This document shows, piece after piece, positions 12,774 to 56,338 of a stretch of DNA of 64,000 bases (positions are counted from its first letter, which is position 1; each line of letters opens with the position of its first letter). The notes under the pieces are model-generated. The model worked only from the letters and a program-made list of their open reading frames with translations, did not search any database and was not told the origin of the DNA. The position numbers were made by a program, and so were the translations under genes. Where the stretch lies: NCBI GenBank assembly GCA_002269645.1, contig NIVC01000514.1, forward strand, positions 372,001-436,000, written 5' to 3'. The DNA comes from Macrostomum lignano. Its lineage: Eukaryota.

Positions 12774-13944
12774 ATGGCCGCGTCAGCTTCGTTCACTCGG
12801 TTTGACGTTCAGAACATCATCAAGTTTGGAGTTTTGGCTGGAAATCGGCAACTGCAATTCATGAAAAGCTTGGAGACGTTTTAAAAGAAGAAGCTCCATC
12901 AGTTCAGACAGTGCTCAAGTGGGTTCGTGATCGTGAGGTCCTGAGAGGGAGGCTGTGCATGGAAGAGAAAGAGCGCTGCGAAGGCCGAGAACAGCTACCA
13001 CCGACGCAAATGCCGAGCGTGTGAAGGATGCCGTGACAGAGAACGGCAGGCTCACTTGCGCTGTGAGCTCAAGGAACTTCCAGACATTCCCCGCAGCACG
13101 GTGCATCGCATCCTAACTGAGAACTTGGGCATGCAGAAGATCTTCGTCAAGTGGGTGCCCCACCTGCTGACAAAAAAAGCAGATGGAGGAGCGGGTGAGG
13201 CTGTCCAGAGAGCAACTTCGTCGATTTCATCGAGTAGGCAACGACTTCCTCAGCAGGATTGTGACAGGGGATGAGACTTGGATCTAAGAATGAGATCCTG
13301 AGCTGAAGCGCCAGTCAGCGCAGTGGCTTCCAAAGGGATCAGCAAGCCCGGAGAAGGTGCAGCGCAAGCAGAGTTCAACGAAGGTGATGCACATCATCTT
13401 CTTCGACGTCCATGACATTCTGATGGACTGGCCTGTGCCAGTCGTTACCAAGGTGAATGCGGAATATTACAAATGGATTCTGCAAGAGAAACTGATCAGA
13501 AAGAAGCGACCTGGCTTGCTGGAGAGAGGCGTCATCTTCCATCACGACAATGCGCCTGTGCACCGCGCCAGAAGAGTGGAAGAGCTCCTAAAGTCCTGGG
13601 ACTGGGAAGTTCTGTCTCAGCCGAGCTATTCGCCTGACTTGGCTCCGGCGGACTTCTACGTTTTCCCAATGATGAAGGAGATCGTCTTCGTGGTCAACGT
13701 TTTGCCTCGGTGGAACAAATTAATAACAGTGTGCTTCATCAGCTCTCCAGCATCTGGCCATTGGCGGTTGCAGCCCTGCCTTCGAGGCGTGGGTGCGCCG
13801 CTGGCAGAAGTGCGTTGACCTCGGCGGCAAATTTGTAGAGTAACTATGAGTTCATTTTGGCAGTTGCAAAGTTTTGTTGATTGTGGATTAACTAGTTTGT
13901 CTTTTATAGTAATAGCGAAACTTACTTTTGGGATAGCCCTCGTA
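12774..13944 (+). mobile_element. Decayed mariner (Tc1/mariner, DD34D) transposon with pseudogenised transposase (12774-13843) and 3' TIR
   Basis: Motifs WVPHLLT, IVTGDETW, HHDNAPVH and YSPDLAPADF with 34 residues between the last two Asp; in-frame stops TAA 13285 and TGA 13291 plus frameshifts; C-terminus WVRRWQKCVDLGGKFVE*; right end CTTACTTTTGGGATAGCCCTCG-TA (13921-13944). No matching left TIR found. Confidence 0.95.
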
Positions 13945-22060: not shown

Positions 22061-22178
22061 GAGATATTCTGCAATAGCAGCCAATAATAGCCATTTGCGG
22101 CGAATCAATTGAGATACTTGGTTCATTAAAATCAACAAATTCACTGATCTTGAATTAAAACTTTTCCTCTGCATCCAG

Positions 22179-22559
22179 CTTCCTCAAGCGCTGCTACATC
22201 AGCCAGCAGGCAGCCGGCACCTCCGCCTGTCCTTGGCACTGCCAGCTCCCTCGTTGGTTCTGTGGATGCCCAGCAGCAGCAGCATTCGCCTTCTGCGGAT
22301 CTGCCAGCCACCTCCGACGGTGAGGAGATCAACACCAAGGAGCTGGCACACCGAATCAGCTCGGAGCTGAAGCGGTACAGCATACCGCAGGCGGTGTTCG
22401 CCCAGCGGGTTCTGTGCCGCAGCCAGGGCACTCTGTCAGACCTTTTGCGCAATCCCAAGCCCTGGAGCAAGCTCAAGTCTGGCCGGGAGACCTTCAGAAG
22501 GATGTGGAAGTGGCTTCAGGAGCCTGAGCTGCAGAGAATGTCGGCCCTGAGGCTGGCGG
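22179..22559 (+). CDS. onecut: Onecut exon 2, CUT domain
   Basis: EEINTKELAHRISSELKRYSIPQAVFAQRVLCRSQGTLSDLLRNPKPWSKLKSGRETFRRMWKWLQEPELQRMSALRLA; acceptor TCCAG|, donor G|GTGAGT at the conserved phase-1 RLA|A position. Confidence 0.97.
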
Positions 22560-22668
22560 GTGAGTTGCTTGCTGCTCTATTCGCTTTGAGGATTTGGAGT
22601 TCAAGATTGAGAGTACAGAAATTCTATATTTCAATTTGGGAGCTATTCTAAGGTGCATAATTTGTCAT

Positions 22669-24065
22669 CCCTGGTGTCATCAGTGAGGGTGCCAGAAACA
22701 CTGGTGTGCATCAGTGAGGGTGCCAGCAACCCTGGTGTCAATCAGTGAGGGTGCCAGCAACCCTGGTGTCATCAGTGAGGGTGCCAGAAACACTGGTGTA
22801 CATCAGTGAGGGTGCCAGCAACCCTGGTGTCAATCAGTGAGGGTGCCAGCAACCCTGGTGTCATCAGTGTGATGCCAGCAACCCTGGTGTACATCATTGT
22901 GGGTGCCAGCAACCCTGGTGTCAATCAGTGAGGGTGCCAGCAACCCTGGTTTCAATCAGTGAGGGTGCCAGCAACCCTGGTGTACATCAGTGTGGGTGCC
23001 AGCAACCCTGGTGTCATCAATGTGGGCACCAGCAACCCTGGTGTCATCAGTGTGGGCACCAGCTGCCCTGGTGTCATCAGTGTGGGTGCCAGCTGCCCTG
23101 GTGTCAATCAGTGAGGGTGCCAGCAACCCTGGTTTCAATCAGTGAGGGTGCCAGCAACCCTGGTGTACATCAGTGTGGGTGCCAGCAACCCTGGTGTCAT
23201 CAATGTGGGCACCAGCAACCCTGGTGTCATCAGTGTGGGCACCAGCTGCCCTGGTGTCATCAGTGTGGGTGCCAGCTGCCCTGGTGTCATCAGTGTGGGT
23301 GCCAGCAACCCTGGTGTACATCAGTGTGGGTGCCAGCAACCCTGGTGTCATCAGTGAGGGTGCCAGCAACCTTGGTGTCATCAGTGAGGGTGCCAGCAAC
23401 CCTGTTATCATCAGTGTGATGCCAGCAACCCTGGTGTCATCAGTGTGGGCACCAGCAACCCTGGTGTCATCAGTGTGATGCCAGCAACCCTGGTGTCATC
23501 AGTGTGGGCACCAGCTGCCCTGGTGTCATCAGTGTGGGTGCCAGCTGCCCTGGTGTCATCAGTGTGGGCACCAGCAACCCTGGAATCATCACTGTGGGCA
23601 CCAGCTGCCCTGGTGTCATCAGTGTGGGTGCCAGCTGCCCTGGTGTCATCAGTGTGGGTGCCAGCAACTCTGGTGTCATCAGTGTGGGCACCAGCTGCCC
23701 TGGTGTCATCAGTGTGGGCACCAGCAACCCTGGTGTCATCAGTGTGGGCACCAGCTGCCCTGGTGTCATCAGTGAGGGTGCCAGCAACCCTGGTGTCATC
23801 AGTGTGGGTGCCAGCAACCCTGGTGTACATCAGTGTGGGTGCCAGCAACCCTGGTGTGCATCAGTGTGGGCACCAGCTGCCCTGGTGTCATCAGTGTGGG
23901 CACCAGCTGCCCTGGTGTCATCAGTGTGGGCACCAGCTGCCCTGGTGTCATCAGTGTGGGTGCCAGCTGCCCTGGTGTCATCAGTGTGGGTGCCAGCAAC
24001 CCTGGTGTCATCAGTGTGGGCACCAGCTGCCCTGGTGTCATCAGTGTGGGCACCAGCTGCCCTGG
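22669..24065. repeat. ~30-bp tandem repeat (CAGCAACCCTGGTGTCATCAGTGTGGGTGC), ~46 copies, Onecut intron 2
   Basis: Direct periodicity; source of many spurious ORFs. Confidence 0.97.
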
Positions 24066-25229: not shown

Positions 25230-25765
25230 CAGTCAGATAAGAGATCTCAAACCCAGTCAGATGTGAGATTTAACACTCAATCAGATCTGAGATCTCAAGC
25301 CCAGTCAGATGTGAGATTTCACTCTCAATCAGATCTGAGATCTCAAGCCCAGTCAGATGTGAGATTTCACACTCAATCAGATCTGAGATCTCAAGCCCAG
25401 TCAGATGTGAGATTTCACACTCAATCAGATCTGAGATCTCAAACCCAGTCAGATGTGAGATTTCACACTCAATCAGATCTGAGATCTCAAGCCCAGTCAG
25501 AGGTGAGATTTCACACTCAATCAGATCTGAGATCTCAAGCCCAGTCAGATGTGAGATTTCACACTCAATCAGATCTGAGATCTCAAGCCCAGTCAGAGGT
25601 GAGATCTCACACTCAATCAGATCTGAGATCTCAAGCCCAGTCAGAGGTGAGATTTCACACTCAATCAGATCTGAGATCTCAAGCCCAGTCAGAGATGAGA
25701 TCTTACATTAAATCAGATCTGAGATCTCAAGCCCAGTCAGAGGTGAGATCTTACACTAAATCACA
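25230..25765. repeat. 48-bp dimeric repeat of two 24-bp subunits (TCAGATGTGAGATTTCACACTCAA + TCAGATCTGAGATCTCAAGCCCAG), Onecut intron 2
   Basis: Direct periodicity, ~11 copies. Confidence 0.95.
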
Positions 25766-25946
25766 CTCAAATCTCAAACTCCACTCTGATTTCAGAGGCC
25801 TTCCACTCAAAAGAGGACTCCGTGGCGTCGGACAAAATCTCCCCTGCCAGAGCGGCAGGAGTCGGTGAGTTTAGCCTGAGCTGCTGCTACCCGAGGGCAG
25901 GGGGGCACCCCAAGCCTTGATGACTCGAACCCGCCCTGCATTGCAG

Positions 25947-26617
25947 CCTGCAAGCGCAAGGAGGAGCCGGACGGGCTCTCCGACCTGTCCCTGTCCTCCA
26001 CCAGCGTCGCGGACTCGGCAGCCGTTTCTGGGACCACGGCGGCCGCGGCGGCTTCTTCGCTGCTGCTGACCGCCGACTGCGCCGGCCGATCGCCGCCAAA
26101 AAAGCCGCGCCTGGTGTTCACCGACATTCAGCGGCGGACGCTGCACGCCATCTTCAAGGAGACGAAGCGGCCCAGCAAGGAGATGCAGGCAACCATTGCC
26201 CAGCAGCTTTGTCTGGAGGTGTCCACTGTCGCCAACTTCTTCATGAATGCGCGCCGGCGCTCGCTGGAGAAGTGGCAGGAGGACGACAAAATCAACGTCG
26301 GCTGTCGCCCGTCCGGTGTCGATGTCGACGAGGACTCGGTAGGCGCCGGCGCGGCCTGCGACGTCAGCGGCGTAGACGGCTGCCTACTGCCGCCCGGCTC
26401 CGACTCGCTGTTCGATGATCGCCAGTCGGAGGTGGCCTCCAACGACCCGCTGGCTGAGAACGACGACAACAGCGCCAACTCTGCCGTCGGCCTCGACGCC
26501 GCCGCCGCTGCCGTAGGCGGCTCGCCAGAGTCCGGCTCCAGCCTGCTGACCGCCGGCCACCTGCTGCAGGCCTCCATGCTCATGCAGCCCGCGCACTCCA
26601 CCCTGCCCGGCCTCTGA
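25947..26617 (+). CDS. onecut: Onecut exon 3, linker + Onecut-class homeodomain, stop TGA
   Basis: TTGCAG| acceptor; ACKRKEE...PKKPRLVFTDIQRRTLHAIFKETKRPSKEMQATIAQQLCLEVSTVANFFMNARRR with the diagnostic F48/M50. Confidence 0.97.
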
Positions 26618-33337: not shown

Positions 33338-33400
33338 CCCTGAACAGTTTTAGAAATTTATCTATTCAATATCAAAATCAAAATAAATTCTCAGACCCAC

Positions 33401-33597
33401 CTGGAACTTCTCCACCAGACTCTTATGCCTGTCCATGTCCGTGGCGTTTATGAGGTCGGACATGAGCTGGACGGTTGCCATGCGCTGCTGTTCGGTGAGC
33501 TTAAGCGTCTCCATCAGGCCGGACTGGAGGAGCAGCGAGCAGCCCATGCGGGTGTGGTGGTTCTCCAGAGTGAACTGGGTGTCACCTTTGGAATCGT
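33401..33597 (-). CDS. Phosphodiesterase exon (TLENHH ... LINATDM)
   Basis: CCCAG| acceptor phase 1, CAG|GTGGGT donor phase 0; conserved ENHH and ATD motifs. Confidence 0.92.
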
Positions 33598-33939
33598 CTG
33601 GGAGGCGCAGAGGCGCGGGACAGCCAGGTGAGAGCCAGTGCACGCACACGCAATTTCATAAAAATTCACAATATGACATAAATGCTGGCTTCGCAGATTG
33701 ACACCAAGTTTCAAGAAGTCAGCAGCAAGCGGCACCGGAGCTCTGAAGATTTCTATTGTAGTATTACAGAGCACAGCACTGCCGCTCTTCGACCCAAACC
33801 AGAGCCTTGCTGAGCCAGACCAAGCCGGGGCTACTTTACTAAGCTCAAATTTTTACATCGTGGGAAACGATGTAATGTAATGTAATAGTACACCTGACCT
33901 GCTGCTGCTAGCCGCCACAAATCAAATGCAGCCTCCTAC

Positions 33940-34602
33940 CTTTCCTCAGCTCGCGGAAGCGGTCGTTATACGCCTTGAAGAAGTGGTCGTGATTGAACAG
34001 GCACAGGTACTTTGTAGTGCAGCCCGGGTGGCCCACATCGTGGCACAGCGCGGCCAGCAGGGTGGTGAACACCTCCAGCTTGTTGAGGTGGAACTTGTGC
34101 TGAATGCCCGGCTGCTGCAGCATCACGTAGAAGGCCTGGGTGACGTCGATGGCGTGCAGCTGGTTGTGGTAGGGGTTGCGGTACTGGTACAGCCCCGCCG
34201 TGCGCTGCAGCAGCCAGGCGCAGATCACGGGGTCCATGCACAGGCTGCCGGCCTGGAAGAAGCCGCAGCGGTCGAACAGGAACATGCCGAACTGGTGCAT
34301 CGGCTGCTCCACCAAGCGGTCCAGGGCGAACACGTCGAAGCGGCATGGCGAGTCGATCTGGCGCCGCAGCAGCAGCTCGGCCGAGCCGAAGTACGAGGCA
34401 TCCAGCACGCCCAGCTGGTCCACGGGGCGGCGGTAGCCGTCCTCCTGCAGGCGGACCTCCACCTGCACGTTCATGGAGCGCGGGTTCACGTGGAAGGTCT
34501 GGTGAGAGCGCGGCTTCAGCAGGCGGCAGCGGCTGCTGGAGCGGGCCTGGCTGCAGTCGGCGCCAAGCGGCATCGCGAAGAGAAATCGGCAGATACTCGC
34601 GG
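33940..34602 (-). CDS. Class I cyclic nucleotide phosphodiesterase catalytic exon, PDE7-like. Model: ~35139..35004, 34602..33940, 33597..33401, 31596..31370, 30595..30271
   Basis: FDVFALDRL, NPYHNQLHAIDVTQA and HDVGHPG metal-binding motifs; donor AAG|GTAGGA. The PDE7 resemblance is from remembered alignment (LLQSGL, NPFREW, QQP) and is tentative; 5' acceptor at 34603 inferred from phase. Confidence 0.93.
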
Positions 34603-35003
34603 CTTCGAATGGTTAAAATACTCGAGTGAATTATTTGGTACTTTTATTGCTTAACAAAATCTGGGGCGCAGAGGCCGTCGGCTTTACAAGCAAAAGATTG
34701 ACTCTGGGCCATAGATGCAGCGCTTCAGACTCCAGCTTCAGATTTATCCCCCACTTTTTTATTTTCATTCATTTATTTAACCGGGCCAGATAAATGACGC
34801 AACTTTTGACATAGACATGTATTTTGAGTTACAAATGAACGAGCAGCAAACGATGGAACGAGCAATGTTTTGAACAAAAACGGATATTCAGTCTAATTAG
34901 ATGTCATTGAAATGTATATAAACGCTTATTGTTGTTAATAGAAGTTAATTAAATTAATTAATTAATGATCAATCAAAGTGGATGCTGATTCTGTTAGTCT
35001 CAC

Positions 35004-42812: not shown

Positions 42813-43546
42813 CTACGCTGACGAGCGGGAGTCCTCGTCCAGGGCCGCCTCGGCGGCGCCGCTCACCGCTGCGGTCTCGACCGGCGCGGGAGAAGCCGCG
42901 TTTGGCGGTTCCGCTGGCGCCGGCTCGCTGGAGGGGCCGATCAGCGTGTGGATCTTGGAGAAGTCGCCCTTGGACGGACTGGCCGACACTGAGGCCGCCG
43001 AGAGGGGCACTGCCGAACTCGAGGTTGCGGCTGCTGACGCGAGAGAGGCGGCGGCGACAGCGGCGGCTCTACCAGGCGAGGGCGACTTCCTGGCGCCTCC
43101 GTAGGGCGAGAATCTGTGCAGTCCGTGATGGAGCTTGGCCGGGCCGCTGCCAGACCCGTGGCCCAGCGGGGACGCGAATCCCTGGTGCGGCGGCGGCGGA
43201 GGCGGCGGGTAGCTCCCGCTAGCAGGGAATCCTCCCGGAAAACCCGCGGGAAAGCCGGCAGAGCCCGGAAATCCAGGCGGGAAGCCGCCAGGCGGAGGTG
43301 GAAAGCCGAAGAAGGGCGGTTTGAAGGCTGCGGCTGCGGCTGCGGCTGCGGCGGCTGCTGCGGCGGACCGGAGCTGATGCTGCTGCTGCTGGTCTCCTTT
43401 GGACGATGCGGAGTGAAGCCAGGGCTGATGAAGGAAGCTGTGCGAGTTCAGCACCGTCACGTTTGGTGGCGGGCCGCCGCTGCCGCTCTTTGATGGCGAC
43501 TTGCCGCTAGCGGTGCCGTCTTTGCTGTGCCGAGCGGGCCCGGGCG
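42813..43546 (-). CDS. Tbx2/3: Tbx2/3 exon 6 (poly-Ala, RFSPY motif, C-terminal FSKIHTLIG), stop TAG
   Basis: Strong acceptor CCTTCCCTGCCTTCCAG| phase 1, matching the previous donor; HRFSPY resembles the Tbx2/3/omb R(Y/F)SPY motif. Confidence 0.85.
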
Positions 43547-43772
43547 CTGGAAGGCAGGGAAGGCCAGCTCAGAGTTGCACTTTGAAGCGGGAACCTCGGT
43601 GGCTATGAGGACACCTCGCGATCCCCCACTTCTCAATTCCCCAATTCTATGCGGACATTGGCACTTTAAATTGCCCCGTTGAAAGTGAAGATTGTGGTCA
43701 TGCCGATATCCCCCTGTTCTGGGCCTGTCAGCTTCTATCAGTGACTGCACACGATGGGCGCACTTTTCTCAC

Positions 43773-44257
43773 CTGCTCCGCTGCTCACGCCGTTCCCAGC
43801 CACGCCGTTTCTACCAGCTGCCTCCGCTGTGCCGCTGGGCGGCTCCTCCCGACGCTCTCCCGAGGAGTCTCGACGCCGGCGCCGCTCCTGCCTCTCGGCG
43901 GCCAACAACAGCTGCTGGTGCTGCAGCTGGAGCTGCTGGTGCAGCTGGAGCTGGTGCTGGTGTTGCTGCAGGAATGCGTGCTGGTGCTGCTGCAGCTGGT
44001 GATGGTGCCCGCCAAACCCAGCGGCCAGGAGGCTGGGGATGAGGTTGCCGGCGGCGAAACCGCGCCGCAGGTGTCCGGTGAGGCTGCCGACGTCACCACT
44101 GCGAATGTCGTCGTCAGTGTCGAAGCTGGCGGCGGCCGCGGCGGCCTCGTCATCGTCGTCGTCGTCGGAGTCGTCGGCTGGCCCGGCGGCGGAGAGGCCG
44201 CGCGGCCGCTGCCGCCCATCGGGGAGGTGGAGCTGCGAGCCGCCTTCCGACATCTTG
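43773..44257 (-). CDS. Tbx2/3: Tbx2/3 exon 5 (acidic, His/Gln-rich)
   Basis: ACTGCAG| phase 2 and CAG|GTGAGA phase 1; open frame with GC3-rich codons. Confidence 0.85.
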
Positions 44258-44289
44258 CTGCAGTGGGGAGTGCGGGCGAGGGGTGTTTG

Positions 44290-44567
44290 AGGTGGGGCGG
44301 ATTTAGTTCTAGGTGGGGCGGATTGGATCTAGGTGGGGGCGGATTGGATCTAGGTGGGGGCGGATTGGTTCTAGGTGGGGCGGATTGGATCTAGGTGGGG
44401 CGGATTGGATCTAGGTGGGGGCGGATTGGATCTAGGTGGGGCGGATTTGGTTCTAGGTGGGGCGGATTTGGTTCTAGGTGGGGCGGATTTGGTTCTAGGT
44501 GGGGCGGATTTGGTTCTAGGTGGGGCGGATTTGGTTCTAGGTGGGGCGGATTGGATCTAGGTGGGGG
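44290..44567. repeat. 20-21-bp tandem repeat (AGGTGGGGCGGATTGGATCT), ~13 copies, Tbx2/3 intron 4
   Basis: Direct periodicity. Confidence 0.95.
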
Positions 44568-44638
44568 CCTCGTTTTGAGATGTGGGATCGGCAGGTGTAT
44601 GATGGGATTTGAGAGGTTTCGGAAGTTCCCAGGCTTAC

Positions 44639-44865
44639 ATTTTCTTGGAGCTGCGACCGCCGCCGGTGTCCCGGAAGCCCTTGGCGAACGGGTTGTGGTC
44701 GATCTTCAGCTGCGTGATTTTCTCGTTCTGGTAGGCCGTCACGGCGATGAAAGCGGTCTCGTTGAACACGAAGGTGCGGAAGGTGGAGAAGGGCAGCTTC
44801 ATGATGTCGGCCGCGCGCACCAGGTGGAAGCGAGGCTGGTACTTGTGCATGGAGTTCAGGATGGT
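44639..44865 (-). CDS. Tbx2/3: Tbx2/3 exon 4, T-box C-terminal part
   Basis: [68 protein letters not shown]; CGCAG| acceptor, AT|GTAAGC donor. Confidence 0.98.
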
Positions 44866-45434
44866 CTGCGGAGTTCGGAATGACGGGTTTCATTTTCATA
44901 AATGTGGATCAAAGTTTCGAATGATGGGATCTGAGATAGGGATCTGGGATTCTGGGATTTAGTGACACCACAAACTGGGTGTCACGATCCGCAGTTTTTG
45001 CTTGAGTTCGCTACTCAAGAAGCATGAATAATTAATGCTTAATTACATAATTGCCCACCTGGCTACAAGAATATCTAATTCTAAGACATCAGAGCGGTGG
45101 TTTTCCACCAGAGCGGCTGGTGAGACACGCATCTCCCCGGCCATTGTCGGCTCTGTGATCGCCGGACTGTGCGGTAATGAATGGCCCGACCAGCCATGTA
45201 GGCGAGCTCGAGCTCGAGCCCGGCACCCCGCTGAGAAGGCGGGGCTTTTAGAAAGTTTTGTTTGATAGGAGAGAGTGGCATCAAGGTAAGGCTGTGAGAT
45301 GTGAATCAATGCGTGAGATTATTTGGGAAACCCATGCCCTTTGTGATCAAGTGAGCGAAATTTACGGCAAGGTGGTGCAATATTTATTGCTCTCTGATGA
45401 GACATGAGATTTACGTGTAAAATTGTGAGATATG

Positions 45435-45740
45435 TGAGTAGAGGTGTGAGAATTGAGTAAAGGTGTGAGATTTATGAGTAAAGGTGTGAGATTTATGAGT
45501 AAAGGTGTGAGAATTATGAGTAAAGGTGTGAGATTTATGAGTAAAGGTGTGAGATTCATGACTAAAGGTGTGAGATTCATGACTAAAGGTGTGAGATTCA
45601 TGACTAAAGGTGTGAGATTCATGAGTAAAGGTGTGAGATTCATGACTAAAGGTGTGAGATTCATGAGTAAAGGTGTGAGATTCATGACTAAAGGTGTGAG
45701 ATTCATGAGTAAAGGTGTGAGATTCATGACTAAAGGTGAG
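45435..45740. repeat. 21-bp tandem repeat (GA[G/C]TAAAGGTGTGAGATTCAT), 14 copies, Tbx2/3 intron 3
   Basis: AGGTGTGA at 45442, 45461, 45482 and then every 21 bp to 45713. Confidence 0.97.
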
Positions 45741-46489
45741 GTCTGGGATAAAGGTGTTTTCGAGAAATGGTTCAGCTTCAAGAAAACAATTGCTAATTGG
45801 CTCGCTGATCTGCAAGCAAAAGTGCGGCAGTGCCTGTGAATTACAGTTTGAGCAGCCGCAGCCCTGACAGACTGTCTGAGGCGATTTTCAAATGCCGGCA
45901 TGCAGCGAAAGCGGAGAGAAGAAGCTGGCGAGACTCGGGATTCCGGGGTGGGAGCACGCAGGTGAGCGAGAGAGGGGGGCCCTCCCTGCGTGCCCCGCCC
46001 AGCCCCCGTACCTTCTCACGCTGCGGCTTCTCATTAAGCAGAGCTCAGCGCCGGCTCATTCTGTAATCAGCGGGCGCGGCCGCCCGACCAGGAGTGGCAG
46101 CGGCTGGCGGCTCAATTTTTGCGTCAAAAAATACGGGGGGGATGGGGAGGGGCGGCGGCGAGGCGACAGCGGAGGCGGACGCCAGGTGGGGAAAAGGGAA
46201 AGCGAAGCCCCGGGGTGCAAAAATGAGGATCTCTGCAGGCGCCCGGGATTTCATGACTTGTCACGGAATATCGGGGGAGCTGCGCGACTGAGGAGAAAAC
46301 CTGCGAGTCTGCGTGTGAGAATCCGAGCGAGTGGAAGCCGTCCGCGGGAATTAATATCCCCAGCCGGAGTTCTCCCCGCTGCCGGGTCTGAGCCGCCCGC
46401 AGAACCTGCGGTTGAGCATTCGCTAACAGACAATCTTTTATCCCCTCCTTGAATTGCGCTTTCTGATGGCAAAACAGGCCGTTGGAATG

Positions 46490-47660
46490 TGGGATTGGGG
46501 AGTTGTGATTCGGGATTTTGGATTCGGGATTTGTGATTCGGGATTTGGGATTCGGGATTTGGGATTCGGGATTCTGGAGTTATGATTCACGATTCTAGAT
46601 TTGTGATTCGGGATTTGTGATTCAGGATTTGGGATTCGGGATTTGGGATTCGGGATTTGGGATTCGGGATTTGGGATTCTGGATTTTGGATTCGGGATTC
46701 TGGTTTTATGATTCACGATTCTAGATTTGTGATTCGGGATTTGTGATTCGGGATTTGGGATTCAGGATTTGGGATTCGGGATTTGGGATTCTGGATTTTG
46801 GATTCGGGATTCTGGTTTTATGATTCACGATTCTAGATTTGTGATTCGGGATTTGTGATTCGGGATTTGGGATTCTGGATTTTGGATTCGGGATTCTGGT
46901 TTTATGATTCACGATTCTAGATTTGTGATTCGGGATTTGTGATTCGGGATTTGGGATTCAGGATTTGGGATTCGGGATTTGGGATTCTGGATTTTGGATT
47001 CGGGATTCTGGTTTTATGATTCACGATTCTAGATTTGTGATTCGGGATTTGTGATTCGGGATTTGGGATTCGGGATTTGGGATTCGGGATTCTGGAGTTA
47101 TGATTCACGATTCTAGATTTGTGATTCGGGATTTGTGATTCAGGATTTGGGATTCGGGATTTGGGATTCGGGATTTGGGATTCTGGATTTTGGATTCGGG
47201 ATTCTGGTTTTATGATTCACGATTCTAGATTTGTGATTCGGGATTTGTGATTCGGGATTTGGGATTCGGGATTTGGGATTCGGGATTCTGGAGTTATGAT
47301 TCACGATTCTAGATTTGTGATTCGGGATTTGTGATTCAGGATTTGGGATTCGGGATTTGGGATTCGGGATTTGGGATTCTGGATTTTGGATTCGGGATTC
47401 TGGTTTTATGATTCACGATTCTAGATTTGTGATTCGGGATTTGTGATTCGGGATTTGGGATTCGGGATTTGGGATTCGGGATTCGGGATTCGAGATTCGG
47501 GATTCTGGAGTTATGATTCACGATTCTAGATTTGTGATTTGGGATTCGGGATTCGGAAGTTGGGATTTTTCAGTCAGAATTTTGGATTCGGGATTTGGGA
47601 TTTGGGATTAGGGGTTCTGGAGTTGGGATTCGGAATTTTAGAATTTGTAACTTGGGATTT
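46490..47660. repeat. Heptamer-based (GGGATTT/GGGATTC) higher-order repeat, Tbx2/3 intron 3
   Basis: Marker CACGATTCTAG recurs at spacings that are all multiples of 7. Confidence 0.95.
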
Positions 47661-47916
47661 GGAATTAGAGATTAAGAACTTCAATATCAATAGCATTTGG
47701 CATTATGGTTGTTCCAATCAGGCAGCTATCAGAGCCTCGATCAGGATTGGCGGGCATTCGCACATGAAGGCTGACTGAAACTCCCGCACCTAATTTTCCA
47801 CAGTCGCAGAATTCCCCAGGTCTGCAGCGGTTCATCATTGAAAACTTTTAAATAAAACTGGCTGTCGGATTTCAAGCCCGGGGCATGCGGGCCGGTGGCA
47901 TTTGTGTCGGGCTGGT

Positions 47917-47983
47917 ATATCAGTGCCCGATATCAGTGCCCGATATCAGTGCCCGATATCAGTGCCCGATATCAGTGCCCGAT
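47917..47983. repeat. 13-bp repeat (GATATCAGTGCCC) x5
   Basis: Direct. Confidence 0.9.
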
Positions 47984-48768
47984 CTCGCCGGCGCAATGGC
48001 CAAGGCGCCAAATTGACACCGGACTGAATGGCGAGCCGTGCAAAAGTCACACGGAGCAGATAAGGCATCTGCCGCTTGTGCAACCCGCTCAGGGAGCCGT
48101 GTTGCAGAAACCTGCCGGACAAAGCTGCTGCTTGAAGCCGCTGCCTCATCCTGTCCGAGCTGATTAGGCGGCGCGCGATGACGGGAGGCGGTCAATTTCT
48201 GCGCCATTAACAACCGCTCTGGTGGCATTTCTGGGGGGGGGAGTCCAGAGGAAGTGGGGCCCGGGCAGGGCGAGTCGCCGGTCCCTTTGATCGGCCGCTC
48301 GCCCAGCCGCTTGTAATTTGCGAGCCGAAGCCCCGCCAGCTTTAGCCGGCAATTTCGGGCTCTGTGACAAATTCTCACGTGTCTGACAAACTCCAGCGAT
48401 GCCTTCCCTCTGCATCTTCTTGTCGTGACTGCGCACAAGCAGGGAAGCTGCAGAAAGTGACGCATCCTTTGGCTTTGGCCTTCCCTCCTCATCATCTCAC
48501 CGGCCCCTTTTTCTCCGCCTCCTTTCCAGCCTCCTCTTTCCGCTTTTGCCGCGGCCCGATTGCCGCCTGAGAAATTGCTGCGGGCGCGGCGGGGCCTCCG
48601 CTTTGAGGCGCTTTGATTGCGCCGGGCAAAGGGGGGGGGCGCCGGCCCTGAGCCTGGCTTGCTTCATCATCTGCTGCTCTGCCTTTGGTCTGAGCTTTCC
48701 CGAAATTGAACCCGAAAAATTTGAGCGGCCGAGAGGTGAGAAATGTGACGGTGAAAGTGTTAGGGAGA

Positions 48769-49045
48769 TGAGGTAGAGTGTGGGAGTTAAAGCAGAGTTC
48801 TGCAGGTGAGGTAGAGTGCTGCAGGTGAGGTAGAGTGCTGCAGGTGAGGTAGAGTGCTGCAGGTGAGGTAGAGTGCTGCAGGTGAGGTAGAGTGCTGCAG
48901 GTGAGGTAGAGTGCTGCAGGTGAGGTAGAGTGCTGCAGGTGAGGTAGAGTGCTGCAGGTGAGGTAGAGTGCTGCAGGTGAGGTAGAGTGCTGCAGGTGAG
49001 GTAGAGTGCTGCAGGTGAGGCAGAGTGCTGTAGGTGAGGCAGAGT
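48769..49045. repeat. 19-bp tandem repeat (GTGAGGTAGAGTGCTGCAG), ~14 copies, Tbx2/3 intron 3
   Basis: Direct periodicity. Confidence 0.96.
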
Positions 49046-49867
49046 CCGGGAGGCAGTACAGAGCTGTCTGCAGATTAACTTTGACTGTCCCAGAACACGG
49101 GGCAAAGCCATTGGCTGATTCTTGACTTGTGCAGCGCAAGAAGTAGAAGAAGCAACGAAATTCTGGGTGAATCGATGGACTGCAGGCCCCCACCCGCCTT
49201 CTGAAATCCTTCTGTCTATAAGCTCAAGTCGCTATTTGCCCTGGATTTTGCTCGCATCCTGCAGCGATGGGCCCGACAAGATGGTGCTAAGGCGGGCGGC
49301 GGATGCAGCGGCAGCTGAGAACTTTGAGCTCTTGGAGCGGCGCTGCTCACCAAGGCGCGAGTCAGAGAGCGAGTGCGCAGTGAGCAGTGAGTGAGAATCG
49401 GCAGTGAAATCTGAGATTGAGCAAACAGGGGGCGCCGTGTGTCGGCTTGGGTGGCGGCTGGGCGGCCCCAAGCCGAGGCTTGACAGGAATTTAAACAAAA
49501 AACGAGAAAAAAACAGACATGCTTTTTGCAATGTTAAAAACCGAGGGCGTGTTTAACATTGCTGGGGCCGCCCGTTGCCGGCAGCTCTGCCCCCCCCCCC
49601 CCCAGATCTGCGACTGAAGACTTTGAGGCGCCTGACCGCCTGTTTGCAGACAGCAGTTCAGGTGTATTGAGGTGGGAGACAAGCGGCGACTCCGCTGCTG
49701 CCGCCGCTGTTTGCCCTCTGGCTGCCGCCCCCGGCCTGTCTGTGAGCTCAAATATTCCTGATCATGTCGCCGCTTAATGACCTGCGGCCTCGGAGCAATT
49801 AAAACTGACTGATGGCCCGCGTGATTCCGCACAGGTAAGTAGATTGACTGACAGACAGGTGACTCAC

Positions 49868-50039
49868 AAAGCCGTGCTTATCCGAGATGTTGTTGGTGAG
49901 CTTGAGCTTGTGGAAGCTGACAATCTTCTGCATCCACTGCTCGCCTGTGCTCGGACTGTCGGGGTGAATGTAGATCCGCTTCGGCATCTCCGGGTCCGCC
50001 TTGCCCGCGACGATCCAGCGGGAGTTGTGGAACTTGTAC
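49868..50039 (-). CDS. Tbx2/3: Tbx2/3 exon 3, T-box
   Basis: [57 protein letters not shown] is diagnostic of Tbx2/3; CGCAG| acceptor, TTT|GTGAGT donor. Confidence 0.98.
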
Positions 50040-50069
50040 CTGCGGGGCAGCGGCATGAGCTGATGTGGC

Positions 50070-50340
50070 CTCTGACCCACTTCGCTCTGACCCACTTCGC
50101 TCTGACCCACTTCCCTCTGACCCACTTCCCTCTGACCCACTTCTCTCTGACCCACTTCCCTCTGACCCACTTCCCTCTGACCCACTTCCCTCTGACCCAC
50201 TCCCCTCTGACCCACTTCCCTCTGACCCACTTCCCTCTGACCCACTTCCCTCTGACCCACTTCCCTCTGACCCACTTCCTTCTGACTCACTTCCCTCTGA
50301 CCCATTTCCCTCTAACCTGTTTTTCTCTGACCCATTTCCC
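50070..50340. repeat. 15-bp tandem repeat (TCTGACCCACTTCCC), ~18 copies, fills Tbx2/3 intron 2
   Basis: Direct periodicity within a 320-bp intron. Confidence 0.96.
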
Positions 50341-50359
50341 GGACCTCCGCCAGCCTCAC

Positions 50360-50455
50360 CTGCAGTCGTCAACGGGCACGATGTCCATCAGCATGATGTA
50401 CTTGGCCCGCTTGTCCAGGCCGGCCACCTTCACTTTGAAAGGCGGAAACATCCGG
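50360..50455 (-). CDS. Tbx2/3: Tbx2/3 exon 2, T-box
   Basis: [32 protein letters not shown]; TTTCAG| acceptor, AG|GTGAGG donor. Confidence 0.97.
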
Positions 50456-52861
50456 CTGAAATGAAACGAGGAATAAATGCATAATTAGGCATGCATAATG
50501 CAGGCATAATTCAAAAGCCATGGGTCATAATTCATAGTCCATAGGCCATAGGCCAAAAGACAATTCATAGGCTCTCTCGCGGAACTGCATGAAAGCAAAA
50601 ATGCCATTCCAAGCTTCCCGGCTAACACAGGGCGGCATGCGTGGCACCTTCGTGGCGGCACCGAATGATGGATGGCTTGAGGGGTGGGCAGAGACGAACA
50701 GCCTGAGTTCAGTTGGTTAAACAAAGCCGGGCTGAAGTTGATTTTACACAAACACCGCCCCGCCAGATGCCAAAGTTTTGAGCAGCGGAGAGGGTGGGGC
50801 GGCTTGCAATGAGAATGAAATGGAGAGATCACAGCAAGAGTTGACAGCTCCAGCTTGTAGTGCCAGGTGCCTTTTTCAGTACTTGACTCTCAGAGACTTT
50901 GTTTAACCTGCCTGAGCTCTCTCTCAACTCATTTCCCAGCCCAGTGCCCCGGCCGTTGCCATGCTCTCTAGCCGGCAACTCAAGACAGGCTCGGGGCCCA
51001 GCTGAACCCGTGCATGCGGATTGCGTCAGCGGGCCTTCTTTGCCCTGCTTGACCCGGGCCAGCCACCCAGTACTGACAGATGAGCCGTTGACACTCGACC
51101 GGCCTGTTTGATGTGCGGCCCGGGCGGTGTCTTCCTCTGGTCCGGGCCTCTTAATTTGATGAGGCCGGCATTGCCGGGACGAGCCGGATGCGGCCTCTCC
51201 TGCCGGCATTCACCGCGAATTCGTGACCGGAGCCGCGGGCCCGGGGGCCACTCACGGCCAGATCAATTTCACTTAATGCACCTGGGCAAAATTGCGCAGC
51301 GAAGTGGGCGGGACCGACCGGCTGAATGGGGGGGGGGGCGGCTGAGAGCCGCGCAGATTCCTGAAACGCGGGCGGGCATCGATGGCGGCGGCGCTGGCGG
51401 ATCGATGCTAGCGTGCCGCTCAGCCGCCCGCTGCTCAAATGGCCGCTTTTGTGCCCGCGCCGCCGAGAGCAGGAGGAGCAGCTGAGAGCGGAGGGGGAGC
51501 CGCTTTGTCCGGCCCCGCGGCCTCATCCGCAGCTTCCACCTTTCAGCCGCGCGCATCCGCCAGGTGGGGAAGCCGGGCAGAGCAGAGCAAATGTTTTCGT
51601 GATCGCTCAGGGCTGCGGCCGCCAGTTTCTCCTCCTCTGCTTTCACTTCGCGGGCCCGCGGGCGGCCCTTGCAGGGGGCCACCTGACCTCATTCTCAGGA
51701 TGGAGAGCCACGGGAGACTGGGTGACTAAATATCCGGCTATGGGCCAATCTGCATCTGCAGCTTCACTTCATTTATAAATTTAAAAGGCAAAAAAGGCAA
51801 CGAGAGAAACAGGGGGGGGGGCACAAAAGGAGCGGGAGGCCGCTGGCGAAGATGGACGAGCTGCTGCCGGGCTGCCGAGCCGTTGAATGGCCGCGGTGGC
51901 GGCGCCGCCACGCCGACAGCTCCGGGAATGACAGCTGCTGACTGCGGGACCAGCGGGGACCCCCGCTTTACCTGTCCGCCTCGCCTCCCCCCCCGCGTTG
52001 AGAGAGACAGAAAGAGAAACAGGGGCAAAAGAAGAAGACATACAACTGGAGAGGCGAACGCAAACAGACGCGCTGCTGGGAGCGATGGAGACATGCGGGA
52101 GGCTGGCTGTGCCGAGTGAATTGGCGGGTGGCCATCAATTTCCCCCCTCCGCTCCCACTGCAGCCGCCGCCGTCCCGCACCGAGGGGGGACGCCACTTAT
52201 CAGGTTCGATTAGCGCTTTAGCTTGACAACTCGGCGCTCCTGTGACCGCGAGGCGCTTCAAGATGACAATCTGTTTGCGTTGGCCTCCCCTCCTCCCGCA
52301 GATAGCGGCCTCCCCCTGTCTCCCTTGCATCCCCTCCCTCTGGCTGCCTTGCCGCAATGCAGCTTCACTCCGTGGCACTTGCAGTGTCGGCGGCGGCGCC
52401 CCAGCAGCCTCTCAGCCGCCTGTCTTCTTCACGGCAGCGGCGGGGGCAGCAATTTAAAAAGTCTCCCGCCAGACTGGAGCCGCCCGGCCGCAAGCAAAAC
52501 ACGGGCCGCTCGGATTCGCAAATTCCTGCATGACCACCGCGGTGGGGTGAAAATCGAGGGGCTATCGGGCCGCATTAATCCCCCCGCCCATTGTGCCAGC
52601 TGGGATCGCAGCGAACTGCAGACTCCCCGCAGCACCATCGACCCCCCATCAGCCCGGCAGATCGCAATCTCAGGCGAGTCCGGCACCTGATCGATACCGG
52701 GCCGAGCAGGGGGGGAGCAGGTGTGGCTCTCGGCACATCCCGCACAACCCGAGAAGTGATTAAAAACTGCCTGCATACCCACTCGGGTCCGATGATCCTC
52801 TCTGGAGGAAGGAAGGGGGGACATTGGCAAACACGAGCCCGCAGTGATATCGCTGTCCAGA

Positions 52862-54211
52862 TCAAGCGCTGCTCAATCGGGACTCAAAGGCGCCATTGGG
52901 ATGACATTTAGCTGTGGCGCTGCGGTGCTGTTTGCCCAGCCACTTGACTGGGGCGCCTGAGGAGGCCTCCCGCGAGCTCAAAATATCTCGAGACACTTGA
53001 AATTTTCTCAGAGTGCCTGAACTCCGCTCGTCTGTCTGGGGTGAAAAAAGCCAAGAGAGTTGACAGAACCTGAGAACAATAAATAAACACAGGCGGCCGG
53101 GGCTCGCGTGCCCAACTGTGCGGGGCGGAGTCTGCGGGGCCGACATCTCTGCAGATGAGGCCATAAGGCTCTGATATGTGAGGACTCAAGGCCAGCTCAA
53201 GAGTTTTAATCACTTCACCAAATGCATTAAAGACCCAGCACTGTCTGTTTGCACTGGGGTGCCCGGCATGTCGGGGCTGCCAAACTCCGGCACTTGCCAC
53301 AAACAGTTCGCGGGTCGCGCTATTCACTCTCACCGCTGTCAGATCTTTGATGCTTTTTTGATGGAGTTTGTCATCCGCACGGCGGAGCCACGCCAGCCTC
53401 TCCTTCAGGCGGGTGACGCCCCGGCCCGGCCCTCTAAGCTCCGACGGCCCCACGGAGCCCCGGCTGCAAACAAAACCCGCAGCTCCAGGAGGCTGGCAGC
53501 CGGGGCGGCGCCAGCCGGGAGGGGGTGGCGCTGGTGGCCGTCCATCTCTTTAGTCTGGGCGCAGAACTTACGCTGGGATAAACTTCCCTGGCCAGCCTCC
53601 CTTCGGCACCAACTGAAAACTCCCCCGGGGTTTCAGGACAGCAGCATCAACAGACGGCTGTTTGTCCTGCCCGAATTCTGCAGCGCTCGCTTGTTGGACA
53701 AACAGGCAACTCGCCTGGCCGCCCCGCTGCTGGCATCAAGTGCCCCAGAGTGAGCTCTTGAGCAGCGCTGTGTTGTCTGACAAGTGGAGCGCAGCTATTG
53801 GACACTCTCGAACACGCTCACACAGGCTTGTCAAGAAGCACAAAAGCTGCGCCACCCGCGGCGCCGGGGCCTCCCTGCCCTCTGCAACATCTCTGCTCTC
53901 TCTCTTCACAGCCTGCATATAAAAGAAGCCAGAGCTGCAGCTCTAAAGCAGCAAGCGGAGCATCGCAGATTGCGCCGGGGTGACGCCGTCTGGACTGGCG
54001 ACTTGACAGAATGAGGTGGCGGTGGCAGTGGCGGCGGGGATGAAGGAAGCGGTGGCTGTGAGCTGCCAGAAGGCGCCCCGGCCCCCCCCCTGTCTGCCCC
54101 GGCGTCAAGTTCTAACAATTTAAGCGATAATATCAACGGATTTGGCGACAATCCGACACGGGGCCCGGGCAGATTTAGTGGCCAGATAAGGCCCGGCTGT
54201 AGGGGTCCCAT
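52862..54211 (-). pseudogene. Candidate NHL/beta-propeller (possibly TRIM-NHL-like) gene or pseudogene inside Tbx2/3 intron 1
   Basis: ORF 52908-53453 contains AVRVNSATRELFVAS, CWVFNAFGEVIKTL and SEPYGL (NHL-blade-like); phase-compatible 108-bp GTAAGT..TTTGCAG intron at 53571-53464; upstream Cys-rich segment with a frameshift and a stop. Not confirmed by any search. Confidence 0.35.
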
Positions 54212-55011
54212 TGTGACCCCATTGTGCCCATGGGCTCACTCGGGCAAGAGAGAAGCAGATAAATGTCACCGAGCCGGCTTGCTCTGCTCATTGCTCAAGC
54301 TCCACAGCATATAAAAGGCTGTATATTTCTCAAACTTGAAAACTTGCCCAACCCCCACTGATGCCAAGCAGAGATAGGGGGGGGGGGGCGATTCCCGAGT
54401 CCTCTAGCGAGAGAACAAGGCGGAGAGAATCGGGTGAGCAAGGCCGAGGGTGTCTGACAAACTTCTAAAAAGTTTTCGAGGTCGTCGGTTTTTAATGGCG
54501 GCGCCTCGGAGGCTGCCGGTGAAAGCAAGTGCCGGGCCTTCCGGAGCGGCAGGGGTGAGTGAGACTGCGAGAGAACAAGACGCCAATCTTCTGAAGCAAC
54601 TTGTTCTGCGCAGTGAAACTGCACCCGCGGTTTCGCTATTCCAGTGTTTGCTTCGAGCTGTTTATGGAGTTAGCAGGGCTTGGGAAGGCAATAAAATCCC
54701 CCCGCCTGAGCTGCTTGGCGGTTGGCGCCAGCGGCCGCTGAATTGATGCGGCAGATTGCCGCTCTCTAATCCGCTTGAAGACGGGGGGAACCTGCATGCA
54801 CCCACCAGATCTCCGGGATCAGGGGGGCGGGACTCTGACTGCTGAGACGATTTCGAATTGCCTGCCATTGGATTTCTATGGCAGTCTGTATTAATAAAAC
54901 TGCCCGTGTTGATGAGAGTTTATGAGGCTTCGAACACTGCTTATGTTATACAGTAGCTTGATGCTCATCTTAGCAATCTTAGCTGAGCCCAATTACCTCC
55001 TGATGTCCTTC

Positions 55012-55590
55012 AGTTGGCGCTACCCCTACAGTTGGCGCTACCCCCTATATTTGGCGCTACCCCTACAGTTGGCGCTACCCCCTATAGTTGGCGCTACCTC
55101 TATAGTTGGGGCTACCCCCTATTGTTGGCGCTACCCCCTATAGTTGGCGCTACCCCCTATAGTTGGCGCTACCCCCTATAGTTGGCGCTACCCCCTATAG
55201 TTGGCGCTACCCCCTATAGTTGGCGCTACCCCCTATAGTTGGCGCTACCCCCTATAGTTGGCGCTACCCCTATAGTTGGCGCTACCCCTATAGTTGGCGG
55301 GTTGACGCTACCCATTGAAAATGGCGCTATCGAGATCTTTGGCGCTACCTATTGAAAATAGCGCTATCCAGATCTTTGGCGCTACCCCTACAGTTGGCGG
55401 GTTGGCGCTACCCATTGAAAATGGCGCTATCCAGATCTTTGGCGCTACCCCTACAGTTGGCGGGTTGGCGCTACCCATTGAAAGTGGCGCTATCCAGATC
55501 TTTGGCGCTACCCCTACAACCGTGCTACCCCTTGAAATTGGCGCTACCTTTACCGTTAGCGTTACCCCCAGTTGGCTCTACCCTCTCAAA
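55012..55590. repeat. 19-bp tandem repeat (GTTGGCGCTACCCCCTATA) grading into diverged ~57-bp units, Tbx2/3 intron 1
   Basis: Direct periodicity. Confidence 0.93.
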
Positions 55591-55720
55591 TAATGATTAT
55601 TAATACCAAGCCTTGAATGTCTGCCGGGACGGCAACTGAGACTCGTCACTCTGGGTCTGGGTTTTATGAGGAAAAATTCAATTCTAGAAAAAACCGGCAG
55701 TGCAGCGGCCCGAGACTCAC

Positions 55721-56217
55721 CGGCCACTCTTGGTGATGACCATCTCGGTGCCGAAGCCGTGGAACTGATCCCACAACTCCTTCTCCACCAGCTCCACCTT
55801 CGGGTCGTCGGTCACCTCCGCCTGCTGCTGCTGCTGCTCCTCCGCGGTCGGCGGCTCGAAGTTCCTCAGCAGGCCGGCGGCGGCGGCATGTGCGGGCGAG
55901 AACAGCTCCGACGGCATCAGCGGCGGCGGCCCAGAGAAGCCGCCGATCGTCTTGCTGGCCGTCGAGCCTGCCGTGGACGAAGTTCCTCCGCCGCTGGCCC
56001 CGCCGCCGCCTCCGCCAGAAGAAGCGGCAGAGCTGGCAGCGGCGGCTGCGGCGGCTGCAGCGGCAGCGGCGGCGGCAGCGGCCATGAAGCCGGGGTGCGG
56101 GTGGTGGGCGGCAGCGGCGCCGGTCGGGTGGTGCGGCGGGAAGCCAAAGTAGCCGGGCAGCAGCGGCAGCTCGGCGGCCGAGCTGGGGAAGCCGCCGACG
56201 AAGGGGTTGAAGGACAT
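55721..56217 (-). CDS. Tbx2/3: Tbx2/3 (omb-like) exon 1. Model: 56217..55721, 50455..50360, 50039..49868, 44865..44639, 44257..43773, 43546..42813 (736 aa; an in-frame upstream ATG at 56334 would give 775 aa)
   Basis: MSFNPF resembles the Tbx2/3 MAYHPF motif; poly-Ala; [30 protein letters not shown]; CG|GTGAGT donor. Confidence 0.95.
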
Positions 56218-56338
56218 CGCCAGCGGGAACTGCAGCTGCTCGGAGATGAAGTGGCTTGGCTGGGCAGGTTGGGGTTCCCAGAGGAGCTCCGGCACAAATT
56301 GTTGAGTTTTTGCTGAGAATCCCGCGGCCTCCATTTCC

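Follow-up and report, generated by a model that had tools for sequence, protein, structure and literature searches.

Fourteen T-box half-sites in an intron of a Tbx2/3-type gene: most likely a neutral minisatellite carrying the motif by chance

When a gene encoding a transcription factor carries, inside one of its own introns, a regular array of perfect sites for that factor, does the array regulate the gene or is it a tandem repeat whose unit merely happens to contain the motif? The question is raised by the window (the whole stretch of 64 kb of DNA that was analysed here), in which the T-box half-site AGGTGTGA is found 14 times by exact search, only on the + strand and only between positions 45442 and 45720, in an intron of a T-box gene read from the opposite strand. 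The original prediction saw in this array a homotypic auto-regulatory element or a protein sink. Our analysis favours another answer: the array is likely to be an ordinary young intronic minisatellite (VNTR), neutral, with the T half-site present in its unit by chance.

The sites themselves are where they had been predicted to be. They start at 45442, 45461, 45482 and thence in 21-bp steps up to 45713, the first spacing being 19 bp and all the later ones 21 bp; on the minus strand, which is the sense strand of the gene, the array of AGGTGTGA reads as TCACACCT. The array and its internal variants, as obtained by TRF, exact search and unit-by-unit dissection, are as follows.

45405–45738, no strand assigned: minisatellite array with a 21-bp unit (TRF: 16.0 copies, 92% matches, 1% indels)
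45442–45720, + strand: 14 T-box half-sites AGGTGTGA, head-to-tail (exact search)
45400–45441, + strand: two decayed in-register copies, AGACATGAGATTTACGTGTAA and AATTGTGAGATATGTGAGTAG, at 45400 and 45421
45461–45544, + strand: left block of four units, three of type ...GATTTATGAGTAA and one of type ...GAATTATGAGTAA (unit dissection)
45545–45733, + strand: right block of nine units of type ...GATTCATGA[C/G]TAA (unit dissection)
45734–45772, + strand: decayed right-edge copies, AGGTGAGG... and AGGTGTTT..., which contain no T-site (sequence, unit dissection)

The TRF consensus of the array is AGGTGTGAGATTCATGAGTAA, and when the array is cut at each AGGTG the full unit takes the form AGGTGTGAGA-T/A-T-T/C-ATGA-G/C-TAA. 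Every full unit also contains TGAGTAA or TGACTAA, so the AP-1-like element that had been noticed is indeed present in each of them; this heptamer agrees with TGA(C/G)TCA at six of seven positions, which is a weak resemblance. In the right block the units follow one another in the order C C C G C G C G C (GACTAA or GAGTAA), a 42-bp higher-order alternation that is typical of recent slippage or unequal exchange. With a head-to-tail unit in the 10–100 bp range, and with variants and decayed edges that fit slippage, the array is a minisatellite; its copies are those of one haplotype.

The host gene was modelled by six-frame translation for the T-box exons, the splice junctions then being read from the sequence, which gave the following predicted structure.

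42813–56334, − strand: predicted Tbx2/3 coding region of six exons and 775 aa, with GT-AG introns and a frame open to a TAG stop
55721–56334, − strand: exon 1
50360–50455, − strand: exon 2
49868–50039, − strand: exon 3 (YKFHNSRW...ISDKHGF)
44866–49867, − strand: intron 3, 5,002 bp, which hosts the T-site array
44639–44865, − strand: exon 4, the C-terminal part of the T-box
43773–44257, − strand: exon 5
42813–43546, − strand: exon 6

The encoded domain, at residues 174–370 or thereabouts, matches the Pfam T-box family with E=5e-83, and its best match among solved structures is human TBX3 (1h6f; 381 bits, 84% identity over the whole domain), TBX5 (260 bits) and Brachyury (197 bits) being weaker. 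One segment of 12 residues is identical to that of TBX3, and one segment of 11 residues differs only by a preceding His in the place of Asn. Both of these segments we take, from T-box–DNA structures, to be in contact with DNA. Judged by its predicted protein the host is a Tbx2/3-type T-box gene, and the placement of the array in a Tbx2/3 intron is borne out, the intron being intron 3 of the gene model and the distance from the array to the exon-4 acceptor 540 bp. Database searches for related proteins, with the T-box domain and the whole predicted sequence as queries, returned no close relative, the best match having 88% identity over a part of the T-box only, and there were no matches over the C-terminal half of the 775-aa protein. 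Between the array and exon 4, at a distance of 330 bp from the former and about 150–200 bp upstream of the exon-4 acceptor, lies an AT-rich unique block (45020–45075) with dense homeodomain-type cores (AATTAATGCTTAATTACATAATTG); this block bears a closer resemblance to a classical developmental enhancer than the repeat array does.

The case for a functional array is easily stated. Tbx2/3 or another T-box factor would occupy up to 14 independent monomer sites in intron 3 and recruit co-repressors, producing a negative feedback scaled by copy number, a reading that we hold to be unlikely. It is favoured by the quality of the sites, of which 14 of 14 are perfect, and by their flanks, which agree at 10 of 11 positions with the extended preference (AAGGTGTGAgA against the consensus AAGGTGTGAAA), as well as by the close similarity of the encoded T-box to TBX3. 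That AGGTGTGA is a T-box half-site, as the original prediction had it, agrees with the literature, where it is the accepted T-element for T-box factors, TBX2 among them (PMC8653791, PMC4478547, PMC4010391). There is also precedent for autoregulation within the subfamily, since C. elegans TBX-2 acts through three T-sites as a direct repressor of its own promoter and Ciona Tbx2/3 is named among other autoregulated T-box genes (PMC4478547), and six-fold multimerised T-sites give strong activity in T-box-dependent reporters, the T-site mutant in that study being a change of AGGTGTGA to AATTTTGA (PMC4010391). Given sites that match the consensus in full and an encoded T-box with 84% identity to that of human TBX3, naked DNA of the array would probably bind T-box domains in vitro, and the intron of a gene under active transcription, in cells that express Tbx2/3, is a plausible place for such binding. 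The sites that TBX2 occupies in vivo, however, number only from hundreds to a few thousand, which is a minor part of all consensus matches (PMC8653791).

The likeness to the worm gene has its bounds. C. elegans tbx-2, like the gene described here, encodes a repressor of the Tbx2 subfamily and has T-box sites within its locus (PMC4478547), in line with the logic of the original prediction, but the worm sites are three dispersed, imperfect promoter sites (for example, AGGTGGCA at −259) that have been validated by mutation and in vivo binding, whereas the array consists of 14 identical, perfect intronic sites derived from repeat amplification, candidates read from the sequence. Moreover, the exact search found no copy of AGGTGTGA outside the array in the rest of the 64 kb, exon 1 and the promoter region included. 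Variants of AGGTGTGA with up to one mismatch number 55 in the window, the 14 exact ones among them, against 45.7 expected, which corresponds to background outside the array. A homotypic cluster is recognised by independent sites in excess of chance; what we found in the window was a single amplified unit and no sites beyond it.

The repeat content of the window puts the array in perspective. Tandem repeats make up 21,271 bp, or 33%, of the 64 kb (TRF rows merged into 43 clusters), and 23 of the 43 clusters are minisatellites (at least 100 bp long, period of at least 9, at least 5 copies), six of them within the T-box transcription unit. Four tandem arrays (45405–45738, 46490–47638, 47917–47983 and 48769–49045) are found in intron 3 alone, where they occupy about 36% of the length. 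The periods of the 23 minisatellites are 10, 14, 15, 15, 17, 19, 19, 19, 20, 20, 21, 21, 21, 21, 22, 22, 23, 30, 34, 42, 48, 55 and 62 bp, with a striking mode near two helical turns across unrelated units. The geometry of the array, with its sites on the same face of the helix, had been pointed out; the 21-bp spacing is correct, but 11 of the 23 arrays have periods of 19–23 bp, so this phasing is the commonest period in the window and no special property of the T-site array. Tbx2/3 proteins bind the T-site as monomers, as in the TBX3–DNA structure 1h6f. The tandem T-site preferred by TBX1 and the synthetic six-fold reporters (PMC4010391) share with the array the direct head-to-tail arrangement of AGGTGTGA, but the TBX1 element is composed of two abutting half-sites with an 8-bp pitch and is cooperative, whereas sites with the 21-bp pitch of the array would be bound independently as monomers.

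Several other repeats of the window deserve mention in their own right. An array at 9445–12298 (2.85 kb) consists of 84 copies of the 34-bp unit GAAATCAACGTCTTCATTGGTTACATGGATTCTA at 100% identity, and it is either extremely young or an artefact of assembly collapse or expansion. Intron 4 of the T-box gene contains an array (44290–44566) of a 21-bp unit, AGGTGGGGCGGATTGGTTCT, that has a GC-box and a CCAAT box in each copy; this unit begins with AGGTG and resembles the T-site unit at first sight, but at p=0.56 the two are not detectably related. A Onecut-type gene on the + strand, with a CUT domain (Pfam E=2e-35) and homeodomain exons at 22154–22648 and 25880–26614, has two large minisatellites in its introns (22669–24065 and 25233–25777), and between it and the Tbx2/3 gene lie two exons (33365–33655 and 33911–34612, − strand) of a 3'5'-cyclic nucleotide phosphodiesterase (PDEase_I).

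In such a window, textbook cores of transcription factor sites are found in repeat units with ease. Eleven of the 23 consensus units carry one (CAGCTG, CCAAT, GGGGCGG, TAATCC, TGACG, CAGAC and others), which amounts to a look-elsewhere effect. The same effect is illustrated by the first of the Onecut intron arrays (22669–24065; 30-bp unit, 46 copies), which carries GGTGTCA about 46 times, a match to the relaxed core of the T half-site, GGTGT[C/G]A, in a gene that is not a T-box gene. The Onecut core itself (ATCGAT or ATCAAT) is present in none of the 23 arrays of the window, those of the Onecut gene included.

How surprising, then, is the motif in this gene? Shuffling of the window yielded on average 1.7 and at most 6 occurrences of AGGTGTGA against the 14 observed, a comparison that treats the copied sites as independent. 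The 14 sites go back to one event, the amplification of a single unit, and what has to be asked is how often a unit would contain the 8-mer by chance. For a circular 21-bp unit, either strand being considered, this chance is 6.4e-4 at equal base frequencies, in accordance with the earlier estimate of about 6e-4, and 2.9e-3 at the G/T/A-rich composition of the unit. For the six genic arrays, the probability of AGGTGTGA being present in one or more of them is 0.003 (random sequence of window composition) to 0.011 (shuffled units); for any of the 23 arrays it is 0.018–0.028, and the chance of finding the relaxed core GGTGTSA in the arrays is 0.03–0.19. More broadly, of the 32,896 canonical 8-mers, 531 (1.6%) reach 14 or more occurrences in the window.

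The coincidence of motif and host gene is thus real and non-trivial (p ~0.003–0.01), and it is what speaks against neutrality: a perfect 8-mer is arrayed inside the very gene whose product recognises this 8-mer. Yet it is no evidence of function. With a chance of 0.3–1% per transcription factor gene, and with hundreds to a thousand such genes, a few minisatellites carrying the motif of their own host gene would be expected in each genome of this kind.

If the T-site had been under selection in the array, it might be expected to survive better than the spacer, and of this there is no sign. Among the 13 full site-bearing units of 21 bp only columns 11, 13 and 18 are variable, and all three lie outside the 8-mer; the chance of this is C(13,3)/C(21,3) = 286/1330 = 0.22, and the invariance of the 8-mer among the units is therefore uninformative. 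In the decayed copies at 45400 and 45421 the T-site retains 5/8 and 6/8 of its positions and the spacer 11/13 and 10/13, so that 5 of 16 T-site positions are changed in the two copies against 5 of 26 spacer positions; the substitutions are very few, and the trend is against preservation. By these counts, decay in the older copies spares the T-site no more than it spares the other positions of the unit. That the array is maintained by selection for a role in negative feedback appears to us improbable at best.

Conservation was assessed in 86 T-box loci (561 kb in total), comprising five annotated Tbx2/3 loci (Tubulanus, Paralvinella, Pinctada, Scyliorhinus TBX3a and Oedothorax), 80 metagenomic loci obtained by a metagenome scan with exon 4, none of them close, and one Logan contig. 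In the equivalent intron (between ...KHGF and TILNSMHKY...) none of the five annotated Tbx2/3 loci, all of distant animals, contains AGGTGTGA, and the idea that orthologous introns keep T-sites finds no backing there. Over all the 86 loci AGGTGTGA occurs 11 times against 17 expected, and no two occurrences lie within 500 bp of each other in any of these distant T-box loci; a counterpart of the array is present in none. An ancient conserved cluster of intronic T-sites is ruled out by this comparison of sequences, while such distant comparators say nothing about a lineage-specific function. It is also conceivable, if improbable in our view, that a feedback element arose in this lineage only: the birth of the minisatellite would have supplied 14 in-phase T-sites, the repressor encoded by the gene would bind them, and the length of the VNTR would set the strength of autoregulation.

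The same loci are informative on the structure of the gene. The closest partial relative is the Logan contig (L086; P0033, Logan SRR6399988; 11.7 kb, GC 54%), with 88% identity over the T-box; it has no T-sites and almost no repeats. In this contig the entire T-box after KSGR is contained in one exon behind a 6.3-kb intron, and it represents another Tbx2/3 gene, with heavy intron loss. The GC-rich metagenomic loci L009–L015 are omb-type genes (RQMFPHLKF, ADDYRYKFH) with introns of 50–90 bp. In the gene described here an intron of 320 bp (50040–50359, − strand) interrupts the T-box between DDCR and YKFH; it is found neither in the five annotated Tbx2/3 loci nor in any metagenome or Logan locus spanning that point. 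About 85% of it is a 15-bp minisatellite (50069–50340), and the intron possibly grew, or originated, through repeat expansion. The intron between YQNEK and ITQLKID, which all five annotated bilaterian comparators possess, is in turn missing from this gene, and the pattern of gain and loss suggests a lineage with intron turnover.

Could the array be one copy of a dispersed, possibly transposon-borne family of minisatellites, its presence in Tbx2/3 being incidental? Such an origin is compatible with neutrality, and the extreme richness of the window in minisatellites would accord with it, as would the remnant of a mariner/Tc1-type transposase (DDE_3, Transposase_1) at 13294–13815 (+ strand). When the T-site unit was compared with the 22 other arrays, the best match was the 48-bp unit of the second Onecut array (25233–25777), 20 kb away, which has AGATGTGAGATTTCA in common with it (p=0.01 before correction); this likeness, however, does not withstand correction for 22 comparisons, and no other array of the window is convincingly related to the unit. 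No second copy of the 21-bp unit was found elsewhere in the 64-kb window, no flanking or terminal inverted repeats of the kind that mark a transposon were found around the array, and the dimer of the unit, AGGTGTGAGATTYATGASTAAAGGTGTGAGATT, had no exact match in the collection of metagenome contigs. The decayed copies standing in register with the array suggest a local birth, and we consider membership in a dispersed family to be a quite doubtful explanation.

A role at the RNA level is the least probable of the readings considered, and we give it very little credence. The sense RNA of the intron would contain 16 copies of UUACUCAUGAAUCUCACACCU, located 540–870 nt upstream of the exon-4 acceptor, and these could modulate splicing via CA-rich or branch-point-like elements; what speaks for it is only the position, the strand and the fact that each unit contains CACAC and CUCAU. 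Against it, a scan of the window with Rfam gave no matches, the array is not conserved, intron 3 contains three other, unrelated arrays, and there is no evidence of alternative exons. A tRNA scan of the window was likewise empty.

Repeats are known to influence the genes in or near which they lie. The INS VNTR and the SLC6A4 intron-2 VNTR are the classic single-gene examples, and EWS-FLI1 on GGAA microsatellites and CTCF on the macrosatellite DXZ4 demonstrate that binding arrays may be encoded by repeats. The array resembles the latter two in that the repeat unit is a transcription factor site, with occupancy dependent on copy number, but for the GGAA and DXZ4 arrays there are direct occupancy and functional data, whereas the T-site array is a candidate read from the DNA. 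Human eVNTRs (PMC8024321) are also similar to it, having head-to-tail units of 10–60 bp in or near a gene with transcription factor motifs in each unit, and in both cases any effect would scale with copy number; among 10,264 tested human VNTRs, the length of 163 affects the expression of a nearby gene, a minority. The array differs from the human VNTRs in that its motif matches the product of its own host gene, for which we found no described precedent, and a full-text search of the literature combining "T-box" with "minisatellite" retrieved no description of a T-site minisatellite.

Taken together, these observations leave the auto-regulatory part of the original prediction unsupported: the sites stem from one amplified event in a window that is one-third repeat, their phasing is generic, there is no sign that the T-site is preferentially preserved and no clusters are found in the 86 loci. 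The sink version fares worse on quantitative grounds and is implausible, because random sequence provides a perfect site about every 33 kb and 14 sites are well under 1% of the sites of any animal genome, a negligible share. The neutral origin of the array that we prefer is most likely, and regulation of the Tbx2/3 host gene is most likely not what maintains the array. Under this scenario a local seed rich in GTGAGAT would have been expanded by replication slippage or unequal exchange into the 21-bp array; the unit would have happened to include AGGTGTGA, and its amplification would have copied this single chance match 14 times.

Should the feedback reading nevertheless prove true, the array would represent a regulatory element that arose in one step via repeat expansion, with its dosage given by the copy number, and would bear on the speed at which feedback loops evolve and on the effects of VNTRs on developmental genes. 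As it stands, the case is a cautionary one. In a window of which one-third is tandem repeat, some 1.6% of all 8-mers reach 14 or more copies, and phased arrays of perfect motifs in matching genes are to be expected a few times per genome by chance; in view of this expectation, such arrays should be termed regulatory only on the strength of occupancy or population data.
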